64,000 nucleotides of DNA. It comes from Geosiphon pyriformis uo1 (taxonomy: Eukaryota; Fungi; Glomeromycota). Shown here one piece after another: positions 16,349 through 39,518 of the stretch. The stretch spans positions 328,763-392,762 of the forward strand of contig JAAOMT010000057.1 in the NCBI GenBank assembly GCA_016748015.1, written 5' to 3'. The position numbers and the translations under genes were made by a program. The notes beneath the pieces are model-generated. The model saw only the letters and a program-made list of their open reading frames with translations, was not told the origin of the DNA and did no database searches. Position 1 is the stretch's first letter. Every line of letters begins with the position of its first letter.

Positions 16349-18241
16349 TCATTGAGTTAAGAAAAAATCCAAACTTGTATCACAATCATTTACTTTGGCT
16401 GAAAGGCCCAGAACTGTTTCCATTAAACATTTCATGCTGTCTTCTAACTTAGACACCAGAGACATATTGAAAGACACCACTTCCATAACAATCTTATCAC
16501 TAGTGGCTGCACCCAAACCCTCACTTATTATTATATCCACTTTTTAATTCTATGATAAAGGGGTTACCAATGGCTAACATCTAGGGCTAGGCTGGAAAAC
16601 TGTTGGCCCAAATACATCTAACCTCTTAGCCAGCTTACTAACTTGCTCCATAAGACTGATGAAACTGCACTCAAAAGCAGCAAACCTATCATTGATCTTA
16701 TTCACAACTGATAGAGACAGCTTCAACTTTGAAGAAGAGCCAACATTTGCTGAAACATTTTGACTAGAGAGAAGGGAAAAAAGACTTACCAACAACTTTT
16801 GCTCATGAAAAACCACCAAAAGAAACTGGATGAGCAATGGGTGTCTGTTTTTTCTTATATATATTGGCCAAATAAATCCAATTTTGAGAAGTCATTACCT
16901 ATTTCTCATAAATACCAGAAAACTTACCCAATAAACAAAAATCAGAAATATAACCAAATTGTTTACACTTGGCACAACAGACCAGAAAGAGACTAGTCCA
17001 ATGTAAATTCATACTCTTAAAAATAGACAAAGAGTCAACAGCAGCCAATTTGGATGTCTTATTATTAAAACAAATTACAGCACACCTATTACAAACATAT
17101 ATAACCAGATTATGGCCAATAAAACAAGTTTTTCCACCATAGGATGCCAACAAACCAGAAAGATCATAGACAGTAGTGCCAACTGGTAATATGTACAGCA
17201 ACATCTAATGTTGATTTCTTAATACCCATGTTTGTTTGTCATCAACTGTCTTTGCTACATGAACAGAGTTCTTTTCCATAAGAACAAACCATTCAGCTAT
17301 AACCAAATTAGCTATTTCAGATGATTCAAACTCCACTAAAGTCTTTTGCCACAGGCCAATCAGTTGTATTTTGATTAATACAATCTTACCAAACTTAGAA
17401 AAAACAGATTCCACAGCCAATTTGGGAAGATTGACTGAAATCTCCTTGACAACAATTTTCTAATCTGAATGTTTATTTATCTGCTTGACATTATTATTAA
17501 CTAAAATTTTTTTATTAACAGCCAATTCTTTTGCCTTTTTCAAACTTATTTTAGAAATAAATGAAGATCTGATAATTCCTGGAAATTTTGAGGAAGTGGA
17601 AGTCTCCCCAAAACCATTAATTTGATAAAAAATTTTTTTGATTGCAATTAACTTATCACTATTCATTTTTCCAGGTACAGCAGACAACTCAACATCTAAT
17701 GCAAATAATTTGACTGGTTCAAAACTATGTTTCTCTAGGACATGTAACTTAACATATGGCAGCTAATTGAAACCATCAAACTTTGAAAACAAAAGACTCA
17801 GCACATTATTATCATTACTTACAATATCAAATATTGGAGCCTTCAGAAGGTTGTCTAATACATATGTTTGAGTGCAAGTTTTTTTTGGTATAGCATCATT
17901 CATATTGTCATCCTCACCTGATTTAGCATAGCTTGTTTTCTTGGCAATCATGTTCACCATATTTTCAACATCCAAGAGACTACACATACTGTTAGCAATA
18001 CTGCCAACTTTGTTTCCTCAGACACAATAGGCTTATTGCCAAAAATGTCAATATTCTCCAATGTCAAAGAGCCAATAGACAAGTTAACCAAAACACCACC
18101 AGCATCAGGTTTTTTCGGCTTCTTATATGACACAATGCAAAAGTAGATGCTTTCTATATGCTTCTTTTTAGTGTTTGGGCAGGTCTCTAAACCATCTGAA
18201 CCCAAATTAGAGCCACTAGCAGAAGAGCCTACCAGTTTTAT
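16349..18241 (-). pseudogene. LINE A ORF1 (RRM-like, degenerate zinc knuckle, coiled coil)
   Basis: Fragments 17954-18205, 17460-17687, 17205-17420, 16899-17204 (CAKCKQFGYISDFC), 16574-16837 and 16349-16540 are collinear with ORF1 at 33040-34830. Confidence 0.85.
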
Positions 18242-18489
18242 AATAACAAAAACAGATATATTAAAAGGAATAACTACAAAAAAATGAAAGGGAAAGGAAA
18301 AAAGGGATGTTAATTCTTTAATAAATCTTTGCTTTTGTTATGGTCAGGGAATCGACAAGAAAAAGATAATATTAATTAATTTTATTGATTGTTATTAAGC
18401 TAATTAGTTTTTTAGTTATTTTAATTACATTTTTTCTGGTTGAAAATATGCACAAAAATTTTAATAATTAAATAAATATTATTAAAGTT

Positions 18490-20810
18490 TTATTGGTTTT
18501 TTGGTTAGTTTATTTAAAAACTTTATTAGTCTTAAAACTAAAATAGAATTTAATAATATAAGTTCAGATGTCCAGTTTTTTGCCAATTCTGTTTTAAGAA
18601 AAGCTATTTCAAATAAGCAGTTTTCATATTTGGTGTTGGCAGTTCTTTATTTTATTATTAGCTATAGAATGCAATTTAGTTTTATTCCTGTTGGTGTGTA
18701 TAATAAATAAGATGCTTTGATTCTTAAGAGCTTAAAATTGAAGTCTGGTCTGCTTTTTGATTTTTCCAGTAATACACTTTATTATCTGTCTTTGTATGGT
18801 TTAAAAGCTTTTGAGCAAATTCAAACTAAGAGCAAAATGGCTTTCATTGTGTGTTTTATGAACTCTATTAAAATTCTGAGTCATTTGTTTTCACACAGGT
18901 TTCATGACTTGCAAGTTTTGTTTTGGTGTTTGCTTAATCTTTGGTTTTTCCAGTCTGTATTAGGGTCAGTCCTTCTAATAATTTTTTGGTAAGTGTGATT
19001 TGTATTTTTTTTGAGTGTAATTTGTCTTTAGGTGATCCAATGAACAATTTTTTCTGTCTTTATAGTGGTATTCTTATGTTAATTGTTCTTGGTAAATCAA
19101 AGTTTTTTAAGTTTCTTTTTTTATTTTGGTGATATGGTATTGCTTTTATAGACCAGCTTTGCAGTAAAAATGGTGCTATTTTTAATTGGAAAACCTTTAA
19201 ATGGTAAAAGAGATTGGATCTTTATGGCCCTATTTTTGAATAATTTAAACTTTCTGTTGACTTTCTTAGTAACATGGCTTCTTTTTCTATCTATTTCTCT
19301 TTTTTGAATAATGTTAGATCCTTTAATATTCTTAAATCTAGTAAGTTTAAGTTGGTTTGTGATCATTTATCAAATATTAATATTAATAGCCTGTTTATTT
19401 ACATAGATGGATCTCTAAAGAACTTGGAAACAATCCATATAAGAACTGGTACTACAGTTTTTTTTGAGAACATTAATTTGGGTCTGAGTGTTAAGATTTT
19501 TGGTTTGATGTCTTCTATATTAGTAAAGTTGCAGGCTATTGCTTTGGTTCTTAAGTGTGTTTCTTTTCACAGCACAGTTTAATTATTTATGGACAGTCAA
19601 GTGGCTCTGGATACATGCCAATCTGAATTGAGTTTGGTGTATCTGAATTTTTAGAATTGGTGCTGAGTTAAATAATAACATATTATAAATATTGTTTGTG
19701 GAAAAAATTTAAATATTAGCTAACACAAAGTAAGGAATCATTCAAGTATTTTGGAAAACAAGTACATTGACTTGTTTGCTAATGTTGTATCTCTTTCTAA
19801 ATAGTGTTTTCTCCCTTAATTGAAGAAACATTGTATTATGGCTAGTGGTGATATTATTTTTAGTAATTCTTGACATTTTGTTTATAATATTTTTTGGTCT
19901 GTTTATCATGCATATTGGGAAGTTGGCTTTGGTTTTAGGGTTTTGGCTAGTAGTTTGCTTTTGGACATTGATTAACTGAGTTTGTTCTTGGTATGGCATC
20001 CAAATTTGCATATGACTGCTGGTTTTACTAATAGACTTACTGCTAACATTTTGCACTTATTTTATAAAAGCTTTGCATTATTGGCTATCCATTATTATTT
20101 AAAAGCATCTGTATAACAAGTGTTATTTCAGTGTAACATATTTGTATTGTGATGATGTTAAGATTTTAAACCATGTTTTTTATTGCTCATTTAACATTTC
20201 TGTTTATCATCATTTATTGAATACATATGTAAATGCTTGGAAAGTGTTTTCTGGTTTTTTTCATTCTTTTTTATTTGTATTTTAGCTAATATTCTTCTGC
20301 ATCTCAGATGCTGTAGTGTGTACAGTTCTCTACAAAAGCTTCATTTTTAGTGGTTGGCATCAGAAAGCTGTTTCTGTTTTCAGTAATTCCAAAATGACAA
20401 GTTTAAAGATTATAAGCTTTGTATATGATTTTTGTTTTGCTTTTAGAGAAAAAGTTTGGTTGGTTTGTGCTAAGCATTATTTTTTTATAAAAAAAAATGA
20501 GCTGATTTTTTATGATGATTTAGTTTTTGTTTTTATGTTTGGGCTATTCATAATGTTTTCAGCTGGTGTAATTAGGTTGTTTAAAATTACTGAAACATTT
20601 GGTATTAATTTTGGCTTGTGTAAGTCTTATTTGTTTTTTTAGACATTAGTGATCTGGTTTTGGTTTATATAGATACATAGTATTGTTTTAATTAACTTAA
20701 ATAACTGGTCATATGTAGAAAGAGCATGATTTATTCCTAGTTTAGATTATTTATATAATATATAATATTAGGCAGTATATAGATTTTATTTATTAAAGAA
20801 AATAAAAAAA
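18490..20810 (+). mobile_element. 5'-truncated, heavily mutated LINE (post-RT region, RNase H, CCHC, 3'UTR, A tail)
   Basis: Translations include DVQFFANSVLRKAISNKQ, YIDGSL and KLQAIAL. A 3'UTR remnant lies at 20680-20795, followed by an A-rich tail. Confidence 0.9.
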
Positions 20811-21660
20811 AATAACATAAATAAAAATAAAATTAATATTATTAAAACATTTTTTTTAAATAATAATAATAATAATAATTATTTAATTATTTTTTGACAA
20901 ATAAGTAAGTTTAATATTAAGAATAATATTAAAAAAATTAGATTGTTTTTTAATAAGTTTATTTTTGATATTTGAAATTTAAATAGTATTATAAAAAGAT
21001 TTAATAAATTATATTTATTCTTAATTTAGCTTAATTGGTGTTTTAACTAATTTAAATAGTTAGTTATATATAAAAAATACATAAAACACATATAATTTAA
21101 ATTATTTACTTTAATATATTATATTAAATAGTATTTAAACATATTTTATTAAAATTTAATAAAAAAACAATATAATTAAAATACAATTTTAATATAATAT
21201 ATTATAATTTTAAAACATTAAATATTAAAATTAAAATTATTTAAATAAAAATTTATAATTTTTTTAAAATATTATCAAAATTAATAATATTTTTTAAAAA
21301 ATTTTAGTTTTCGATTATTAATTTAGTTTTTTAAATAAATAATATTATAAATTAATTAAAAAAATACATATTAAAATAAACATAGTTTATTTTTATCATG
21401 AAAAATAATTGTATTAAGCAATATAGTCAAATATTAATTTATATTAATTTAATAAATATTATTATTGCTATTGTTATTTAAATTAAAAAAAAACATTATT
21501 TCTTACAATTAGATTAAAAACTTTTTAAAAAACAGATATAATAAATTTAAAATTTTAAAAAACATAATTTTAAATAATTTCAAAAAAATATTTAAAATTA
21601 CAAATAAATTGGCTATTATTGTTATTTTTGGCTGTTTTGTTAACCATTTAAAAAACAATT
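20810..21660. other. Near GC-free AT tract bounding the gene island (similar tracts at 1320-1915, 31900-32896 and 49972-50716)
   Basis: Almost only A/T, not periodic, no ORFs. Confidence 0.9.
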
Positions 21661-21709
21661 TATTTTACTGTAATATCAAGCTTGATTAGATAGATTAGAT
21701 AGTTACAAA

Positions 21710-21836
21710 GCACATGATGATGAGTTTTCATACAATAACTTTGCAATTTCTATCTTTAAAATATTGGCGGATTCCGGATCCTTTATCACTAAAAGATAAA
21801 GGACATGACGAATTCAAACTTAGCCAAATCTGAAAC
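21710..21836 (+). ncRNA. Box C/D guide RNA candidate; D guide complementary to U2 snRNA, predicting Gm19
   Basis: C box ATGATGA 21714; D' CGGA 21775; perfect 9-bp stem TCCTTTATC/GATAAAGGA; C' ATGACGA 21805; guide CTTAGCCAAA 21819-21828; D box CTGA 21830. Confidence 0.75.
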
Positions 21837-22020
21837 GCACTTGTTTAATGTTTCACTGTGTGAATGTCTTTTTATGAGTTCGCTAAAAGAAACACTTGGT
21901 GTTTCTTGGACTTTTTAAAGAGAAATCATACTTGAAATATGAACATAACAAACTTGCGGTTGTGATAAAAAGTTTTGAATCCTCCAGAGGATTATTTTGT
22001 TTTATTTTCTATTTTCTTTG

Positions 22021-22089
22021 TTGGGCAATGATGAATACGTAAAAGGTTTGAAGGGGTCTTTGATGTGTGTGTCATGTTGTTCTGATCAA
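22021..22089 (+). ncRNA. Box C/D guide RNA candidate; D' guide complementary to U5 loop 1 (Um41), D guide possibly to U6 (Am70)
   Basis: Terminal stem TTGG/TCAA; C box ATGATGA 22028; guide GTAAAAGGT 22039-22047; D' TTGA; C' TGATGT; D box CTGA 22082. Confidence 0.7.
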
Positions 22090-22208
22090 GGTCTTACCCA
22101 GAACCTTTCATCAAAGTTTCAGCGTTGACACTTTGAGTGTTAATGTGTAAGGATGATTGGGCTTGTGTTAATCATATTATTAGAAGCCAACTGTCGCCGC
22201 ATTTTAGA

Positions 22209-22381
22209 TTCATGATTACAAAACAAAAGACTTTCTTGGAAGGTCTCGGAGCCCGTATTTCAAGTAATGAATAATAAATTTTGGTTGTGGGATGATTTAG
22301 AGGAAAGCAAAGACTTTTGTTGTTTATCATATTTATTCGGTTCCCTTTCATTGATTCATCCCCATTTTGAGATTAACATAG
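22209..22381 (+). ncRNA. Possible H/ACA-like RNA (hairpin, ANANNA, hairpin, ACA)
   Basis: First hairpin ATTAC/GTAAT with AGACTTTC/GAAGGTCT; H-like ATAATA at ~22272; second hairpin TGGGATGA/TCATCCCCA; ACA at ~22376. Pocket spacing is non-canonical. Confidence 0.3.
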
Positions 22382-22866
22382 TTTGGGTGTATTTTGGCTC
22401 AGAAGAAGGATTTAATTTAATTTAAAGATTAAATAATGTTCGGAATTTCTAGCTTTACAGAAAGCAAATTAGAATATTAACTTTTAGTGCTGCTGATACT
22501 TCTTATATTGCCTTGATAATTAATAACAATTCCTTTAGAAATACTTTTTCCGTGAAGCTTGGAATTTTGACTGGTCGAAGAAATCAAATTTATTTTGAGC
22601 GGCATATACGACTCAGTTCCTAAGAACAACGTGGTTTCTGCAGGATGCATCATGCAAAATTACTATATCGTACGCAATATATGAAAATCAGATGTTATCT
22701 AATTTTATAATGGTATTCCCATTCCGTACCTCAGTAACATAGCAACAGCCTGATACCTTCCAAGATTACCTTTAGCTGATTTCTTGTTAACTTTGGACAT
22801 ATAATCTTTATCTTCGTCTACTGTGCCTTTTTAAGTTTCTCCGTTTTCAAACTTTCCACCAAGCTA

Positions 22867-24402
22867 ATGTCCTCCGCAGCCACTCCCAACAGACAAACCA
22901 ATCAAGTTCCTGGCAAACTGTATCAATTTAAACTTGTTTTACTAGGTAACGTAGTAACAGATCTTGGTTGACGTAATTATTGTTTTGGGGTTTTAAGCTG
23001 CACATTTACCCATTTTGAAAAGAAACCTTTGTCGAAAACAGCTCCAGATTTTTTACTCTTACTTACTGCTCGTTCTCACTTTTCAAACTTTTGATCCCAT
23101 CGATAATTAGGAGAATCGGCAGTTGGTAAATCAAGGTCAGTTGAAAGTTTTGCATTGAGCTTAAAGAAAAGCCTCATTTATGACAGGAAATTGCACTACT
23201 GGTGGGGTTGGTGAGGGGAAAAATTCCAAATGATGTTTATGGGGCTAACTTTCTTCATATAGGTATTCATGGAGGATTTAAGCAACCTTGTCAATTTAAG
23301 GCATTGCTGCTGAAATTTGAAACTAATCTTCTCCTTTTTAGTTTAGTATTGCGTTTCGTGAAGGATCTTTTTGACGATTACAGAGAAAGTACTATCGGAG
23401 GTTAATATAAAATTTTCTAATCTTTGTAACTAGGTGCGACATAGAAGTAAATAGATCTACTCACATCTCATTTTTATTTGAACTATTAAGCTGCCTTCTT
23501 GACCCAGACAGTGTGCCTTGATGACAATACTACAGTCAAATTTGAGATTTGGTAAAATTGATATTTAAATTATTTAATTTTCGCTACTTGAAACGATATG
23601 AATATATTATTAATAGATAATTTTTTTTGATTAAAAGGGATACAGCTGGTCAAGAACGCTACAAGGTATTGTATTGCTATTATTATCATTAAATCATTTG
23701 ATTTGATTTTAATATATTGTTCACTTATTATTTCTCCAACTTTTAATAAACAGAGCTTGGCTCCGATGTACTATAGGAATGCCAATTGCGCTGTCGTCGT
23801 TTATGATATAACTCAAGCGGTAATATAAACATGAGCTTTTTCTTCAAATCTCTTCTATTAGATATTTCACTGACCCATTAAAACTTGAAACAAGTCCTCC
23901 CTTGAAAAAGCCAAATCATGGGTGAAAGAGTTGCAAAGGCAGGCAGACCCCAATATTGTGATTGCACTCGCTGGAAACAAAAGTGATCTTAGTCCACGTC
24001 GGGCAATCGAAACCGAGGTAAGGATATATCAACTAGGTTAGTGAAAATCACAGTGTAATTATCTTATGACTCATTTCTAGACTATTATCCTTGCACAATA
24101 TGCACTAATCAAGGAGGCCCAAGCTTATGCACATGATAGTGGTTTATTGTTTTTTGAAACCTCTGCCAAGACGGCGACAAACGTGAATGATTTATTTACC
24201 TCAATAGGTATGATGAATATTCAGTTTTTTATCCAACTTTAGTAATTATTAAAATTATCACATTTATCGCTTTAAATGATTAGCGAAGAAAATGCCTCTC
24301 GATCAGTTAGCTGCAAATTCACGCGCACGAGGAACTGCATTGAATACTAGAGGCGTTGATCTTACGCGCCCTCCTCAAGATAACAATGGATGTGCATGCT
24401 GA
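22867..24402 (+). CDS. RAB5: Rab5/Vps21-family small GTPase, 9 exons
   Basis: Exons 22867-22945, 23111-23135, 23342-23400, 23491-23551, 23638-23665, 23754-23819, 23895-24017, 24114-24207 and 24284-24402, all with GT-AG introns. The spliced product reads [59 protein letters not shown]-stop (CXC prenylation motif). Confidence 0.96.
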
Positions 24403-25103: not shown

Positions 25104-28100
25104 TTAGCGCTTGCTACGCTTTCCGTTGGGGGCACCGTTGGTGAATTCAGCTTGTCTCTTCTAATTATGTACGATTTTTACATTTGAGAAGAATCCATTT
25201 ATAGTAAGAATCTCAATACACCAGGGGTTGCCATCAAATTTGAGGTAGCCCAAATTCAAATTTTGAACTGGGGCTTTCAAAGATGCACCAGGGGTTAAAA
25301 TCAACTCGCATCACTTAGATAAGACGCCAAGATGAACGCTTTCACGTAACAGCCATTTTTTGCCTTAGCACGAAAACGGGCCAAGAAAAGAGGCAGAGCT
25401 ATCAGAATTTGATGTTTGGATTTCTGATTGGCTGCAAAATCACTTGGGTGGCCGTTAGTCCAAAACTTTCATGGCGATCCCGGTGATTTTGTCATTGAAT
25501 ATTGAAAACCCCTGGTGGCCGATACCGGTCGCGTTCCCTTATAATGCAAAATTATGGTATGAAAGAATTACCTTGGCGGCAGCTTTTTTCCGCTGTTCCT
25601 CTCTACGTTGTTCCTGTTCTTCTTCAATCTCGCTTTGTTCTTTTTGAATTAGGCTAATGAGGGTAGCACAGCGTCGTGCAAGTTCGGCTGATGTTCTGGA
25701 TTTGATGTACCAATTGAACCGAAACAAAGGTGATTGTTCGATTTCATGGCGTATCTTATCAAATACTTCTTCTGTGCCATAACCATGTTTGGCCAATGTG
25801 ACCACCATAAAGCGATCTTCTTCCTCAGTATAATTTTTTCCCTTTGTTTGGTTATAAGGAATTTCCAATTGGCTCAGTGGAGACCGGTATTTGGATATTT
25901 TTTCTTCAAGTAACTGTTGAATTTCCTGCGTTTGTTGTAGTTTGGCTTCCCCCCGTTCTATTTTTGCCTGAATTTCCTCGTGATCTTTTCGAAAGAATAA
26001 GGATAAGACCTTTTAATCACATTAGAAAAGAAAGAAATATGAAGTCAATGTAGCTTGAACTCACTAGGCAATTCTTGATACCGATTCCAGAAAACTTTGG
26101 CGTATTCTTGAACTTCTTTGAAACTTTTCCCTTCGATTTCTTCTGCTATATTATACATATCATTCCTGCGAAAATCAATAGAAAATTTAAGGGAAATTTT
26201 CGTTCGGAAAGTGCCAATAAAAGGAATTAATTTAATATACATACCGCCCATATTTTGCTGCGGCAGTTACAAAATTGTTAAAGTCACGTTTACTCCAATC
26301 ATGAAAAGCCTGAGGAAAAATAATTAGAAAAAACAGCAACACTCTACCATTTATGCGAGAAATTAGCTTAGAGAGGATATACTGACCTCCTTGTATAATT
26401 CATCTTTTTCATCCATTTCTTCCTCGGTGAGAGGTATCGCTATAGAAAGAGACAATAAGTAGAGGAAACAAAGAGTTTAAGATTTGAAAGTTAAGACTCA
26501 CCATTGTCAATTTTTCTTTGTTCTTCTTGTCTCTCTCTCTCTCGTTCTTGTTTCTCTGCTTCGCGCATTGCTGTATCATCTCCATTCTCTTGTTCAGGCG
26601 ATTCTCTTGTAGGGACTATGTAACCTGCAGATTTCTTCGTATTGTAAAAGAGAGTATGGGTTATGTGAATTTGCCATTGTTATACCATGACGCGTCTGCT
26701 CACTTGTTGGTAATACATCTCCCTCTTCAACAATTCAACCAATCGTTGAGGAAAGAATTGGTATTCAGCCCTAAGAAAAGATTAATAGATCATAATGACA
26801 TTAAACCTATTATTAAAAAAGATCACAGGCATGTATACCAACACATTGATTTGCTTTGCAACTCGTGGTACTCTTGGCGCAGTCGGTTTATTTCCGACTC
26901 GCAATGCTTCTTTGAAATAATTGTCGACCGTGTAATTTGCTTTACGTTCCCTCTTGGGAGGTTCTATCCAACTGAAGCCTGAGACTACTTCCTTTCGCTG
27001 TGAAATGGCATTTAGTTAAATTTAACTTTCCGGAAAATATTATAGCAATATATTTAGAGCACCTTGTGACTCCAATTCTCTCCTTGCCATTCATAGGCGG
27101 ATTCTGAGCTAAATTTCTGAAGATCTTCTAATCCAAGACCCTCATATCTACGGTTAAGCTCAACTGTTTTCTCCTCGCCTTTGAGCAGAATTTGATCTAT
27201 GTCATCTTTCGTAACAGTGCTATAAAAGATTAAAAAAGTTAGAGCTGCTTGAATTATACATGTTATATATGTAAAATGCAAAATTAAAAATTCTTACCTG
27301 TCACTCGAGGTAAAAATACTGTTTGCACCGTGTTGAATCATCGTTAATAGTTCTTCTTTACTTGTGGCTATTATTCAGATATATTGGAAATTTTGATATT
27401 AAATGAGACGATAATAGCAATTTATTCAATATACAAATATTGCTGCACCTTTTTGCGTTTGGCTAGCCCTTCCTTGTTGAATTACGAGCTGATCAAGGCG
27501 TAATTTTTGTGCAGCTCTTTCAAGAACTTTCTCTTCAATTGCATTCTGTCCGAATTATCAAGTAGACGAATGTGATAGATGTTTTTAGTTTCGATTTATT
27601 GATATGAAAACATCGATAGTCACCTACCTCAGTAACAAATCTGAAAACATAAACTTGTTTTGTCTGGCCAATACGATGTGCACGATCTTGAGCTTGGAGG
27701 TCAACTTGTGGATTCCTACGTTAGATATTTATTCAAATTTGCTTTTGAGCATGCCCTAAACGAGATCAAGAAACAAGGTACTTACCAATCACTGTCATAT
27801 AATATTACAATATCAGCTGCTGTTAGATTTATACCGAGACCCCCAGCCCGCGTCGTAAGAAGGAAAATGAATTTTTCGCTTTCTGGTCTATTATACTCAT
27901 CAATCGCTGATACACGATCTTCTTGTTTTGTCTGGCCATCGATGCGACAATAAGCTGCAGGGAAACATTTCAATATATCAAAATTTTTATATAGAGATGA
28001 TTTTAAACTTGATTTTTGCAATTTACGAACCAAAACCACGGAAAAGACAATAATCTTCCAATATATCAAGTACGCGACTCATTTGGCTGAAAAGCAGAAT

Positions 28101-33039: not shown

Positions 33040-34830
33040 ATGAAAGAGACTGCTAAAGTTTCTGGTTCTAAGAGTGGTTTTAAAGTGGTTGTATCAAGGA
33101 AAAAGAGGAAGGGAGGTGTGTTGGCAGAGGGTGTTGATAATAGAAAGGTTGCTGCTGAAGTTCCTGGTGTTTGTTCATGGAGTTCGGAGACTGGGGACAC
33201 TACTGAGTCTGAAAGTGTTGATATGGAAGAGGAGTGTCTGGTGGAGGAAACCAGCTTTGATTATGGTGAAGATGGAACTCTGGCTGGTGGAGATTATGAT
33301 CAGACACCCACAAGTTCGAAGGTTAAAACCAAAAAGGCGTTGGGCAAGCCATTGGGGAAAATTGATTTCTCAAAAGATGGTAGTGATAATGGTGTTCTCT
33401 CAGATGCTCCTCTTGAGCTCCCTCCTTCTGTGAGAAATTTGGTTAATGTTTCAGTCAGGAAATCATTCGCATTGGATATTGGTTTGGATAAAGTGGCCAG
33501 CAAATCTTCTCAGGAAAAACTTGTGGTGGTAAGGAAGCTGTTTTCTGGAATCAATGGTTTTGGGGGGGCATCTACCCCCTCAAAATTTTCAGGGATCATT
33601 AGGGCGATGTTCACTTCCGAATCGAGTCTAATGAAAGCTACTGATAAAGCTGCGAATGCAAAGATCTTAGTAAACGCCGATCTCAAAAATGCATCTGGGT
33701 GATCAGATTGAACTGTGGTCGTGAAAAAAATTCCAGTTAGAACATCAGCTGAGGCTGTGCGTGCTGCGCTATCTGAGTTTGGAGTTATTAGGGCGATCAA
33801 GATACAGTTAATCAGGCTGTGGCAGAAGGCAGTGGTGGAATTCAAACGATCGGATCAGGCTGATTTGGTCGCAGCTGAGTGGTCCATCTTAATCGGGAAA
33901 GATGCTATACGTGTGGCTAAGGCTGATTCAGACAAGGAGGCATGGGATGTAAGGGACCAACATAGGGCACTGCTCTATATGTTGCTGATGGGAACCAATA
34001 CTTATGATATCTGGGACTTTGTTAGATCTGTGGGTGGGAAAACGTGCATCATTGATCATCATTCTATTATGTATGCTCGAGCCAGGTGTGCTGTTGTTTG
34101 TTTCGACTCTGCTGAATCATTGGATACTGCTGTGGGAACCACGCCAGTACTCAAGAACACCAATTTCTGCTGGTCTTATCTTATTTCTGCTAGATGCGCC
34201 AAGTGTGAGAAATTGGGTCACACGTCATTGGGTTGTGCAGTTGGTGAGAAATTGTCTTCTAGTAGTTTACTGCGTAGGGTTTTTTCGGATACAGATAAAA
34301 GCAGGCTGGCAACCATCTATGCCAAACGCTCGGCTCCAGTTGCCCATCCAGTCTTTTTTGGTGGTCTCTCTTGGACAAAGGTTGCTCGCGGGTCTTTTTC
34401 GCTCCCCCTCTCTGGTCAGAATATTGTGATAACAAATGGCTCCTCTTCAGAGATGAAGCCATCCCAACTGGTTACAATAGAAGTCAACGATAAGTTCGCC
34501 GCTCTTGAGCGCAGTCTTGCCAGCCTCGCAGAGCAAGTTGGTAAGCTGGCTAAGAGGTTGGATGCACTCGGGCCAACGGTTTCTCAGCCTAGCCCTGGAT
34601 GTCAGCCATTGGTGACCCCTTCATCACAGGATCAAGAGGCAGATGTAGTGATGAGTGAGGGTTCGAGTGTGTCTACTAGTGGTGGGAATGTCGCAGGAGC
34701 GGTGTCTTTTGATATGTCTTCAGTGTCTAAGCTGGAAGACAGCATGAAGTGTCTAATGGAAACGGTTCTGGGCCTTTCGGCCAAAGTGGACAGTTTAGGT
34801 ATGCTTTCAGTATCTCTACCTCTTACTTAA
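33040..34830 (+). pseudogene. LINE B ORF1 (basic NLS-like patch, RRM-like, CCHC, coiled coil); one premature TGA at 33700
   Basis: SRKKRK patch; knuckle CAKCEKLGHTSLGC; heptads LERSLASLAEQVGKLAKRL. LINE D has CGA at the stop position. Confidence 0.93.
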
Positions 34831-37800
34831 TGAGCAGTTTAGTCTGGAAAGTTGCTACATGCAATGTTAGGGGCATGAACAATCCCGCTAAGCAAGAAGA
34901 CATTATTAGGTGGCATAAGAAAATGAACAATTTAGTTTCTATTGTTACTGAAACGAAATTAAAGAGTAGGGTTCGTCCGTGGATTGCAGACAAGTTTGAT
35001 GGTATCCAAGTGTTCTCTTCTGGTTTGGACTCTGGTCACTTGGGTGCGGGTGTTACTATTATCATGGATGTTTCTTTGGCTCGTCATGTGTGCAAGATTT
35101 CTGAGATGCCTGGTCGGCTCCTTTCCATTAAATTACTTTTTAAGAGTAAACTTTCTGTGTCGATTTTGGGGCTTTATGATGGTGCTTCTTTGGTGGTTCG
35201 GTTTTCTCAAGCTGGTGAAATCAATTCTCTCATTGCAAAGACTGTTAATAAATCTTCTTTCATCATTCTCAGTGGCGATTTTAATGAAGACGGCTCTCAT
35301 AAAAGTACAAGTTTCAAAAGATGCTTTGATTTGGGTCTGGTCAATTCTTTAGTTGGCAGCCCGACTGTAAAAATGCCCACTTGGAAAAATTCTAGGGGTG
35401 TTAAAAAAACAATTGATTACATGTTTGTCTCCTCAAGTCTTGTTAATGCGATAGTGCGTTGTGAAGTTTTAAATGTCAATGAGCATTTTGACATGGACCA
35501 TCAAGCTGTTTCAGTGGATTTGGGTCTGAGTGGGCTCTTGAATACGTGTTTGAATTCTCTTCACAAGCAAGTGAATAAAGATCATTGGAAGTTTGATGTC
35601 AAAAGTGCCAATAAAGCTAAGTGGTTGGAGTTCAAGGATGCCTCAGCTGCTAATGTCTCTATGTTCTTGAATGCTTTTGGTGTAACAGTAAAATTTTCAG
35701 ATGTGGACGCTATATGGGACATTGTTCGCAAGATTATGGTTCTTTCAGCAGGTAGTACATTTAAGAAAAAATGGTTCAAAGGTTTTGATGGCGTGTCCAC
35801 TAAGACTTCTTCTAAGTTTCACAAGCTGGAGCTGCTGGTTTCTAAGTTGGTCAAGGCTTCGCATTTGGCTTCTAGTGATGGTTTTGCTTCTTTGTTGGAG
35901 ATGTGGCACAGACTCGACTCTCCTGGTACATTGGTGGTTAAGTCTCTGTTTCTTTCAGGTTCTAATTTTGATCTTATTTGTTCTGTGCTGGCCAAAGCAA
36001 GAAAATCATACCGCTCCTTCAAATTAGTGGAATCCAAGCGCGCTGAGGAATCTTCGATCAAGCAAGCTATTGGTAAGAAGATGGAGAGTTTTGAGCTGAA
36101 CAAGGGTCACACCATTAGGAGTGTTTTGGAGCGTCCTTTTCACAAAGTGGTCCTGGATCATTTGGTTGTAGAAGATGAGTTGATTTTAGAGCCTGATTTG
36201 GTTAAGTCTAAGGTGGATGAAATTATGGAGGGATGGACCAGAAAACATGAGGTGGTGTCTGACTTATCTGAGGATTGGGCTCATCAATATCAGCCTCTGG
36301 ATTACGTATTCAATGGTGCTTTCTTTGATGTTATGTGTTCGATTAGTTTTGATGAGTTGTTAGCTGTTGTTAAGGATCTTTCTGATGGAAAAGTGGTTGG
36401 TCTTTCTGGTATCTCCAACGAATTATGGAAACATTGTGACAAATCTGTTTTGGATATGCTTTTGGTGCTCTTGAATTTCTGTTTAGTTGACGAGTTGGTC
36501 CCTGGGCCTTGGAGAGAAGCTTGGGTTTTGATGATTCCTAAACCATATGAATGGGAGGGAGTTCTCACAAACACCCATCCTATAGCTTTAATTGAAACGG
36601 CCTGCAAGATTCTCTCCAAGATCCTTTCAGATAGGATCTCTCTGGCTTGCAGCACTTTTGATGTTCTTCATGGGGACAATTTTTCGGTTTTGAAGGGTAT
36701 AATGACTCAATCTCCCATTTTTGCTATCAGTTCTGTGGTTGAGGATGCCTTGGAAAAAAACCGTGAACTTTGGCTGGTTTTACAGGACATGCGCAAGGCT
36801 TATGACTCGGTTGGTTGGGAACATCTTAGGAAGAGTCTAGTCAGAATCAAAATGTGTGACAGGTTTATTAGATTTTTTGGCAGTATTCACAATAGTTGCG
36901 TCAACAAAGTGATGACTGACTTTGGCTTAACTGATGGGTATTGTGTCCATGATGGACTGGATCAAGGAGAAGTTTTCTCGCCTCTTCTCTGGCGTATTTT
37001 TTATGATTCACTTTTGTGTGAGGTCAAGAGACAGGATAGTGTGTATGGCTACAGGTTGAATTCTCATTTCATATCAAGAACTGGCCGGGTGGATCCTCGA
37101 GCTGGGCTGTCTTCATTTTTTGCTGCCGGCACTTTTGTCGATGATACTATCTGGGTTGGTAGCAGCCAGGCTGCTACACAACGCATCCTTGATGTTGCTA
37201 GTGAGTTTTTTAGGTTTAACGATATTTCTGTAAACAATGACAAAACGGTGGCCATCCCCATCAATTGCCGGGTGCTGGATTCTTATTTGACTATCAGTGG
37301 TGCACCTATTTCCATTGCCAAGAGAAAGGAATCTCATCGCTATTTGGGTATTTTTTTGTTTTCTGAGGGTCTTTCGAAGCCCAGCTTGGCTAAGGCCCAG
37401 GCTGATGTACAGTTCTTTGCGAATCTTGTTTTAAGAAAGGCAATTTCGGACAAACAGTGTGCATATTTGGTGTCTGTAGTTCTTTTCCCTATTATCAGCT
37501 ACAGGACTCAGTTTAGTTTTGTTTCTGTTGGTGTTTGTAGTAAATGGGATGCTTTGGTTCGCAAGGTCTTAAAGTCCAAGTCTGGGTTGCCATGTGATTT
37601 TCCCAGTGACACACTTCATCACTCCTCTTTGTACAATTTAAAAACTTTTGAACAGATACAGGCTGAGAGTAAATCGGCCTCCATTGTTGCTTTTGCAAAT
37701 TCTACTGGTGTCTTGGGTCGCTTGTTTTCTCATAAGTCTTATGACCTCCAGGTTTTCAGCTGGCATCCTCGTCATCCTTTGCTATTTCCAGTTCGTGTTA

Positions 37801-39518
37801 GTATCAGTCCCTTGGATAATTTTTTGGTGGGTGTGGTTCACATTTTTTCTGGGTGTGATTTGTCTTTGGGAGGCCCTCTGGATTGTGCTTTTCGTTGTCA
37901 GTGTGGTACTCCTATGTCTTTGGTTCTTGGTGAATTCTGTTTTTTCAAGTGCATCTCTTCACTTAGGCATTATGGAATTGCTTTCATAGAACAGCTTCGT
38001 GACTGTAATGGTGATGTTTTCAGTTGGGGTACCTTCAAGTGCTGGAAGAGGCTAGACCCTCGTGGCCCAGTCTCTTTCTGGTTTGATCTTTCTGTTCGCT
38101 TTCTTGGTAGTGTTGTTCCTCTTTCCTCAAGTTCTTCTTTAGTAGATGGTCAAGCTGTGTCTGATATTCGTCTTTCTCATAATTTTGGTGTGATTTATGA
38201 CACTTTGCCAACCATTGATGCTGCCCGCCTTTCTGTGTATATGGATGAGTCTCTTTCTGGTCTGAGCACTGCTGACATGAGAGCAGGTGCTACCGTTTTT
38301 TTTGAGAACATTAACTTGGATTTGGGTGTTGGGGTGTTTGGTTTGGTTTCTTCTACTCTAACAAAACTGCAGGCCATAGCTTTGGCCCTTGAGTGTGTTC
38401 CTTTTTCTCATTTGATTGACTTGTTCTTGGATAGCCAGGCTGCTTTAGATGCATGTAGGTCAGAGTTTTTGCTGGTTTGTTCGGATTTCAGGAACCGCTG
38501 TTGGATCGAGCGTCGTCACATTGCCACTGTCATTCGTCAAAAGAATTTGGATGTGAATTGGGTTAAGGTGAAAGGTCATTCAGATGTCTCAGGCAACGAG
38601 CATGCTGATGCACTTGCCAAGGGTGCTGCTCGCTCTGCTTGGCGCCTATCTCATTTAGTCAGTGAACGTTTTCTATGTGCTGGTGGCACGGCGGTTTCTG
38701 GTAATTCTAGACACTTTGTTTGTGATGTTTTCTGGTTGTTTCACCAAGCTCGTTGGGAGATTGGAGTGGGTTCTCGTGTTATGGATAATAGTTTGCGTGC
38801 TGATATCAATTGGTCTATGTTTTCTATGGTGTGGCACCCCAATTCTCACTTGGCATCCAGTTTTACCAGCATGCACACGGCGGGATGTTGTACTTACTTT
38901 ATGAAGACTCTCTATCATCGGCTTCCTGTTGCTGTGCGCAAGTGTTTATATGATAGGAGTTACCCCAGTGTGGTTTGTCTGTTTTGTGGTGATGTTGAGA
39001 CCTCGGATCATGTCTTTTCATGTCCTCAGAATGCCGTTGGCCGTGCTCGTTTGTTGGGCGCACATGCTTTAACTTGGGAGGCTCTTTCTGGCCTTTCTCG
39101 CTCTTCTTCATGTGTCTTACAGGCCTTAGCTTCTTGTGTTTCTGAGGTTGGAGTTAGTGTTGCTCTGTGTAAGGGTTTTGTTTTTGATGAATGGTTTCAT
39201 GAGTCTATCTCGGTCTTTAAAGATTCTAGGGAGGGTGCTAAGAGGATTGTGAGCTTTGTGTGTGAGTTTTGTTTGGCATTTCGGAATGATGTTTAGTTGG
39301 TCTGGGCCAGACACCGAGCGTTTATGGAGAAGCATGGTTTGATTCCACGTGATGGCTCCACTTCTGCTTCGGTTTCTGGTTTGTCTAAGGTGTTTTCGGC
39401 TGGTATAGTCAGATTGCTGGGAGTGGCTGAGGCATTTGGTGTTGGTTTTGGGTTTCGTAAGTTTTGTCCATTTTTTTCAGGTATTGGAGATTCAATTTCT
39501 GTGCATATAAGTGTATAG
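34830..39518 (+). CDS. LINE B ORF2: APE-RT-RNase H-CCHC; open to a late TGG>TAG at 39294
   Basis: APE: TCNVRG, ETKL, GDFNE, IDY, DH. RT: QDMRKAYD, GLDQGEVFSP, FVDD. RNH: DSQ, VKGHSDVSGNEHADALA. Zinc finger: CLFCGDVETSDHVFSC. Confidence 0.95.

Follow-up and report, generated by a model that had tools for sequence, protein, structure and literature searches.

In human, ribose methylation of U2 snRNA at Gm19 is guided by scaRNA9 and that of U5 at Um41 by scaRNA5 and scaRNA6 (PMC7960923). The equivalent nucleotides of Arabidopsis, U2 Gm20 and U5 Um44, have been detected by RiboMeth-seq, with U5 Um44 having no assigned guide (PMC8053127). Because they are methylated in human and Arabidopsis, both sites are old and have plausibly been kept in fungi. 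Guide RNAs for fungal snRNAs are a kind already known. CD29 of Neurospora crassa, which has been called SCARNA9-like, guides U2-Am31 and was verified by primer extension, while CD11 of the same species guides U6-Am47 and Schizosaccharomyces pombe has mgU6-47 (PMC2780460). In a survey of 147 fungal genomes, U6 is the sole snRNA target discussed (PMC5824354), and the targets of published guides for fungal snRNA methylation are limited to U6 and U2-A31, besides a few predictions that await testing (PMC5824354, PMC2780460). Budding yeast snRNAs carry few modifications (PMC7960923). A report of a fungal guide for U2-G19 or U5-U41 was not found in the open-access full-text literature. The original prediction had taken loci of the present type to be undescribed in fungi, which stands for these two positions and not for snRNA guides in general, given the published CD29 and mgU6-47. 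The two candidates presented here would add fungal members to this group.

Judged from its sequence, the locus in Geosiphon pyriformis probably encodes two box C/D guide RNAs that direct 2'-O-methylation of U2-G19 and U5-U41. The window, i.e., the whole stretch of 64,000 nucleotides that was analysed, has a GC content of 33%. Both units lie head to tail on the + strand within a GC-richer island (21650-22460; about 26-37% GC and ~33% at the units) which, according to the composition profile, is preceded by ~900 nt of only 4-15% GC and extends toward a Rab5-like gene. Such a rise in GC would be the expected look of functional transcribed sequence in this genome. The island is single copy in a search of the 128-Mb genome. 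Unit 1 spans ~120 nt from C box to D box (21714-21833), unit 2 is more compact with 58 nt (22028-22085), and 194 nt separate the D box of the former from the C box of the latter. The ORF list holds no ORF of at least 50 aa over 21700-22089. The claim of two C/D units ~190 nt apart in ORF-free sequence was thus borne out, with the boxes in place and a 194-nt gap; the units as observed are confirmed, and their interpretation as snRNA guides is supported by the pairing and register described below.

Both units display a C box of the form RUGAUGA near the 5' end and a CUGA near the 3' end, preceded by a U that could form a pair with the final A of the C box. The class typically has an antisense element of ~10 nt or more that ends 1-2 nt before the D or D' box and places the target at position 5; such an element is present in both units, with 10 bp in unit 1 and 9 bp in unit 2. 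Internal C'/D' elements consist of UUGA and UGAUGU in unit 2, and of AUGACGA in unit 1, where a D' is not recognisable.

Pairing was evaluated against the organism's own RNAs. The U1, U2, U4, U5 and U6 genes were located with Rfam models in the same 128-Mb assembly, and a full rDNA unit was located through its 5.8S gene. Over the stretches that matter here, neither the 5' part of U2 nor loop I of U5 differs from the human sequence; the host snRNAs could have lacked the proposed complements, and both the U2 and the U5 of this genome carry them.

The C box of unit 1 consists of two overlapping RUGAUGA motifs, AUGAUGAUGA (21714-21723, with AUGAUGA copies at 21714-21720 and 21717-21723). Further downstream follow an internal hairpin of 9 bp in the minimum free energy fold (21780-21802), located just 5' of the C'-like box AUGACGA (21805-21811), the D guide CUUAGCCAAA (21819-21828) and, after a single U, the D box CUGA (21830-21833). 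Sequence inspection of unit 1 yielded no convincing candidate for a D' box. The guide forms 10 consecutive Watson-Crick pairs with the genome's own U2, at positions 2-11 upstream of the D box, and the duplex amounts to -14.3 kcal/mol. Position 5 (21825) pairs with the first G of the GG in U2 that corresponds to human G19, in agreement with the target and the D+5 register predicted for this unit.

Unit 1 is the sole D-type snRNA match within the window. Its 10-bp duplex is toward the short end of guide lengths, and a permissive Rfam scan of 3 kb returned no family match for it at E values up to 10. A 15-mer of the unit has ten other copies in the genome, located in two transposon families and lacking a C box. 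The support for unit 1 is thinner than that for unit 2; its weight derives from the exact register at a canonical D box, the canonical C box 110 nt upstream, and the presence of unit 2 195 nt away in the same GC island. A guide for A30 of U2 was not seen in unit 1, and a scan of the genome with two strict patterns for such a guide gave nothing or only retrotransposon reverse-transcriptase sequence. The word CTACACTTGACTTGA is found in at least 17 genomic copies (L162-L171 and others), in the region of the FxxLDLxSGYWQ motif of a retrotransposon reverse transcriptase, and we conclude from this copy number that the family is abundant in the genome.

Unit 1 could also be a real C/D RNA whose main or second target is 28S rRNA, namely G2871 (= E. 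coli G2246), with the pairing to U2 being secondary or accidental. The in-register duplex with 28S comprises 11 bp (8 Watson-Crick and 3 G-U) at -15.0 kcal/mol, compared with -14.3 for U2, and guides of double specificity have been documented in fungi, e.g., CD11 and CD29 of N. crassa (PMC2780460). However, alignment with E. coli 23S rRNA puts G2871 in the strand that immediately precedes the P loop, at a distance of 5 nt on the 5' side of a conserved methylated nucleotide (Gm2251, yeast Gm2619, human Gm4196). To our knowledge, G2871 itself has not been reported as a methylation site. Moreover, both guide positions at which U2 and 28S can be told apart are occupied by U, forming A-U pairs with U2 but only G-U pairs with 28S, and matches of 10-11 bp with wobbles are expected by chance, even in register, across 5.6 kb of rRNA. 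We consider an rRNA target unlikely on these grounds and retain U2 G19 as the predicted target of unit 1.

The rDNA units of this genome do not form one tandem array. They are dispersed over contigs C633, C413, C659, C656 and C534, with two copies on C659 that lie ~46 kb apart in opposite orientation. One copy (L012; loci L012-L015) is without 18S and has a truncated 28S. Two full 28S copies differ in sequence, e.g., in the P-loop strand. Heterogeneous rDNA that is scattered in this way, together with a genome of 128 Mb, is in keeping with an arbuscular mycorrhizal fungus.

In unit 2, four nucleotides separate the C box AUGAUGA (22028-22034) from the D' guide GUAAAAGGU (22039-22047), which is directly followed by the D' box UUGA (22048-22051). 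The unit continues with a C'-like box UGAUGU (22061-22066), a UG run (22064-22072), the D guide region (22067-22081) and the D box CUGA (22082-22085). With loop I of the genome's own U5, the D' guide forms 8 Watson-Crick pairs and one terminal G-U pair at positions 1-9, and, counted back from UUGA, guide position 5 (22043) lies opposite the U that is the counterpart of human U41. The predicted U5 target and its D'+5 register hence hold on the organism's own U5, except that one of the nine pairs is a G-U wobble, and the D' box, which had been given as CUGA, reads UUGA in the sequence.

A comparison with Rfam, which had been proposed as a check, further supports this assignment. The only match in the permissive scan of 3 kb was the SCARNA6 model, whose alignment (22023-22059; E value 0.016, 18.7 bits) takes in the C box of unit 2 together with its guide and D' box. 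No more than the initial 29 and the final 4 positions of the model are covered, and the score lies far below the cut-off of 68; at gathering thresholds Rfam gave no match anywhere in the window. The guide is the same as the SCARNA6 consensus. Across the 128-Mb genome, a search for the module TGATGA-N2-6-GTAAAAGGTYTGA gave a single occurrence, and a reversed control gave 0. A paralogue that would show conservation of the guides was not found in the genome.

For the D guide of unit 2, a pairing search against the genome's own snRNAs and rRNA revealed no credible in-register target. The UG-rich stretch UGUGUGUGUCAU (22064-22075) pairs over 12 bp, including a G-U, with a U6 copy of this genome, in a stretch that holds the nucleotide of human Cm77. 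With respect to the D box, the match is shifted by 6 nt from the register, and part of it falls within the C' box; it is probably a coincidence. UG repeats are described as Cajal-body signals of some vertebrate C/D scaRNAs (PMC6412121); the 9-nt UG run of unit 2 appears far too weak for such an element.

In order to estimate chance expectation, 300 composition-preserving block shuffles of the window were searched for in-register perfect 10-mers to any of the five snRNAs (D-type hits) and for D'-type hits, with register and boxes (C plus D or D') required. D-type hits averaged 0.01 and D'-type hits 0.04 per shuffled window. The real window, in which 14 C-to-D box pairs exist in total, contains one of each, 195 nt apart. 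Chance is very unlikely in view of this difference, as had been argued in the original prediction for two independent matches.

That the locus is nevertheless a pure coincidence, made up of short motifs and complementarities in AT-rich sequence picked out by a very large scan, strikes us as highly improbable. Complementarities of the island to snRNAs and rRNA do occur at about chance level for 9-mers and some 10-mers when register and C box are ignored, and the 15-mer of unit 1 is also found in the two transposon families. With C box, D or D' box and register all required, however, the shuffles give only the low rates stated above. Even over 250,000 windows, coincidence is not credible for two matches that lie 195 nt apart, fall on known modified positions and include, in unit 2, the SCARNA6 module that is unique in 128 Mb. 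Two guides, one for each snRNA, remain the preferred explanation.

Further units were not evident in the island: in-register matches of 10-11 bp beside NUGA boxes were found at about chance rate and without C boxes, which includes a TTGA at 22351 that was considered and discarded. Two boxes that resemble a C/D pair (20512-20593) and accompany a 10-bp match to 28S are part of a transposon ORF and are probably due to chance.

As a correction to the original prediction of well-formed units, a canonical terminal stem (at least 4 bp, directly beside the boxes) is absent in both, and only short offset helices were found. In unit 1, ACAA(A)G may pair with CUUGU at an offset of 3-6 nt from the boxes; in unit 2, CUUUG may pair with CAAGG, 7 and 1 nt away from the boxes. 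Some eukaryotic C/D RNAs depend on external stems. The spacer between the units is occupied by a long, near-perfect hairpin of 89 nt (21850-21938, + strand), which is unique in the genome. The 150 nt that hold it (21850-21999) fold at -38.2 kcal/mol with a z score of -3.65, and 0 of 200 shuffles were as stable. Based on the predicted fold, this hairpin may represent a processing element. Yeast Rnt1 uses an AGNN tetraloop, which the loop of the spacer hairpin is not. The stretch 3' of unit 2 (22100-22249) also folds more stably than its shuffles (z -2.46) with a long-range outer helix; neither box motifs nor an Rfam match were found in it, and according to the fold it could be part of the precursor or of the Rab5 leader.

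The flanks of the snRNA genes were compared over 130 nt upstream and 50 nt downstream per gene (loci L001-L006, L144-L147, L009). All Pol II snRNA genes of this genome (U1, U2, U4, U5) have the element (A/T)TCCCACAATT in common, located ~65-85 nt upstream, together with a TATA-like box ~30 nt upstream; in most of them, a motif resembling AGTGGGG follows 10-25 nt beyond the 3' end. The upstream element and the AGTGGGG-like motif look like the snRNA promoter and 3' box of this lineage. One U6 copy carries an element related to the TCCCACAATT type. The U6 copy L008 (G000:C202:5227-5336) is flanked on both sides by tRNA-like sequence and therefore seems to lie within a tRNA cluster; the snRNA-type upstream element belongs to the other U6 copy. 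The promoter element of the snRNA genes (TCCCACAATT plus a TATA box ~30 nt upstream) was not found anywhere in the window.

Downstream of the units, on the same strand, lies a small-GTPase gene of several exons (22867-24402), visible as ORF pieces, whose exons match collinear parts of Pfam Ras. We take it to belong to the Rab5 subfamily, based on its motifs. Its start at 22867 is ~780 nt downstream of unit 2. The arrangement makes the Rab5-like gene a possible host or co-transcribed partner of the units. An ISWI-type chromatin remodeller, represented by its SLIDE domain exon (25539-25868 of the window, - strand), is located tail to tail with Rab5. Transposon-derived ORFs are found on both sides of the locus (16899-20642 and 33040-39296), among them one of 1515 aa (34749-39296).

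Synteny was assessed in public sequence data via the terminal exon of ISWI. In Logan contigs L148-L150 (42% GC), ISWI and Rab5 are arranged tail to tail as in the window. Conservation of the cluster upstream of Rab5, a check proposed with the original prediction, was not seen in the one syntenic relative recovered, L148, which is a distant one and carries neither guide at this place. A gene with an AMPK carbohydrate-binding module lies upstream of Rab5 in this relative, in place of the guide RNAs. No Ras-family gene was found beside the ISWI exon in contigs L152-L159.

These results have a bearing on whether the units are functional at all. They might be decayed or silent copies, or the box-like motifs might belong to the 5' untranslated region or promoter of Rab5, in which case no stable small RNA would be made. 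Such a reading would fit the absence of canonical terminal stems, of an snRNA-type promoter element upstream of unit 1, and of conservation at the syntenic position in L148. It fits poorly with boxes that are intact, with two guides whose register falls exactly on nucleotides that animals and plants methylate, and with a distinct GC island in extremely AT-rich DNA, a combination whose joint occurrence by chance is very unlikely. We regard non-functional units as improbable and favour the interpretation as two active guide RNAs.

The U5 guide module is not limited to this genome. In public metagenome contigs it has at least 120 matches, some of which are coding sequence by chance, and one contig (L022, L035) carries a true vertebrate SCARNA6 with the same module. 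Among the matches (L017-L136) we recognised at least four conserved, mutually unrelated eukaryotic RNA families with the module that are absent from Rfam, each made up of diverged homologues: family A (L019, L030, L047), family B (L033, L044), family C (L034, L040, L104) and family D (L020, L045, L067). Within each family the flanks vary, whereas no variation is seen in the guide or in the C and D' boxes. Family A, with at least 16 distinct members, represents a composite RNA, ~230 nt long and with an ACA-like box at its end, and family D is a C/D RNA of ~95 nt; the D' box of both is UUGA. Since UUGA is the invariant D' box of families A and D, the same variant in unit 2 looks functional and not like a defect. 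The pattern of conservation suggests that the module of C box, GUAAAAGGU and D' box is a widespread, selected device. A search of the metagenomes for both guides with their native spacing gave no match.

With the preferred interpretation of two functional guides, the following mode of action can be proposed. By analogy with box C/D RNPs in general, the C and D boxes of each RNA would fold into a kink-turn and bind Snu13, Nop56, Nop58 and fibrillarin. Once paired with the snRNA, the resulting RNP would methylate the ribose that faces the fifth guide nucleotide upstream of D or D'. Unit 1 would thereby modify the equivalent of G19 in the 5' region of U2 that is required for spliceosome assembly, and unit 2 the equivalent of U41 in loop I of U5, the loop that holds the exons. 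Transcription would probably yield one precursor for both units, or proceed with the 5' part of the Rab5 transcript, followed by processing around the spacer hairpin. We infer the methylations, the assembly of the RNPs and the nuclear site of action, and likewise whatever the terms 'scaRNA-like', in its Cajal-body sense, and 'polycistronic' imply.

Both predicted sites are of functional interest. While catalysis proceeds, the exons are held by loop I of U5. In human extracts, splicing depends on ribose methylation at U2 G19 (PMC7960923). If our interpretation is true, an early-diverging fungus keeps two methylations that are common to animals and plants, and unit 2 would be the simplest known form of a U5-U41 guide. 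Because U5 Um44 of Arabidopsis lacks an assigned guide, the module could act as a probe for it, and it could also be used as a search query in other eukaryotes.

A broader evolutionary scenario is conceivable, which we put forward tentatively and hold to be somewhat more doubtful than not. The module of C box, GUAAAAGGU and YUGA may be an ancient guide for U5 loop I, dating from the ancestor of animals, plants and fungi. In this genome it would survive as a C/D RNA of minimal size that stands alone, and would share a dedicated snRNA-modification locus of two genes with a guide for U2-G19. Early-diverging fungi might then retain an animal- and plant-like ribose methylation of snRNAs that was lost in budding yeast, and the composite scaRNAs of vertebrates might be later elaborations.

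Compared with described guides, unit 1 is predicted to target the nucleotide served by the G19 guide of SCARNA9 and by Arabidopsis SnoR127, which acts on U2 Gm20. SCARNA9 (mgU2-19/30) combines guides for G19 and A30, whereas unit 1 has only that for G19 and is without a match to an Rfam family. CD29 of N. crassa acts on the 5' part of U2 like unit 1, but on A31 instead of G19; it demonstrates that fungi have functioning C/D guides directed at U2. With respect to their genomic arrangement, the units resemble the clustered or polycistronic snoRNA genes of plants and yeast in being placed head to tail on one strand, here with a strongly folded spacer, and differ from them in that both units are predicted to target snRNAs rather than rRNA.

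The closest correspondence is seen for unit 2. Human SCARNA5 and SCARNA6 (U87/U88, RF00478) share with it the order of C box, 3-4 nt, the guide GUAAAAGGU and a D' box directly after, aimed at the same nucleotide of U5 loop I, and the guide duplex of human SCARNA6 also has 9 bp including one G-U. The vertebrate RNAs are, however, composites of C/D and H/ACA domains with ~265 nt and a CUGA as D' box, while unit 2 spans 58 nt from C box to D box and has UUGA, shows no H/ACA domain, and does not reach the gathering cut-off of RF00478, which is set over the full composite model (18.7 vs 68). Metagenomic families A and D have the UUGA of unit 2, and family D together with a few singletons consists of short C/D RNAs of similar build; outside the module, none of families A-D is similar to unit 2. 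On the basis of these comparisons, the two units are best described as putative functional equivalents, unit 2 of the C/D half of SCARNA5/6 and unit 1 of the G19 function of SCARNA9, and not as members of these families by sequence.
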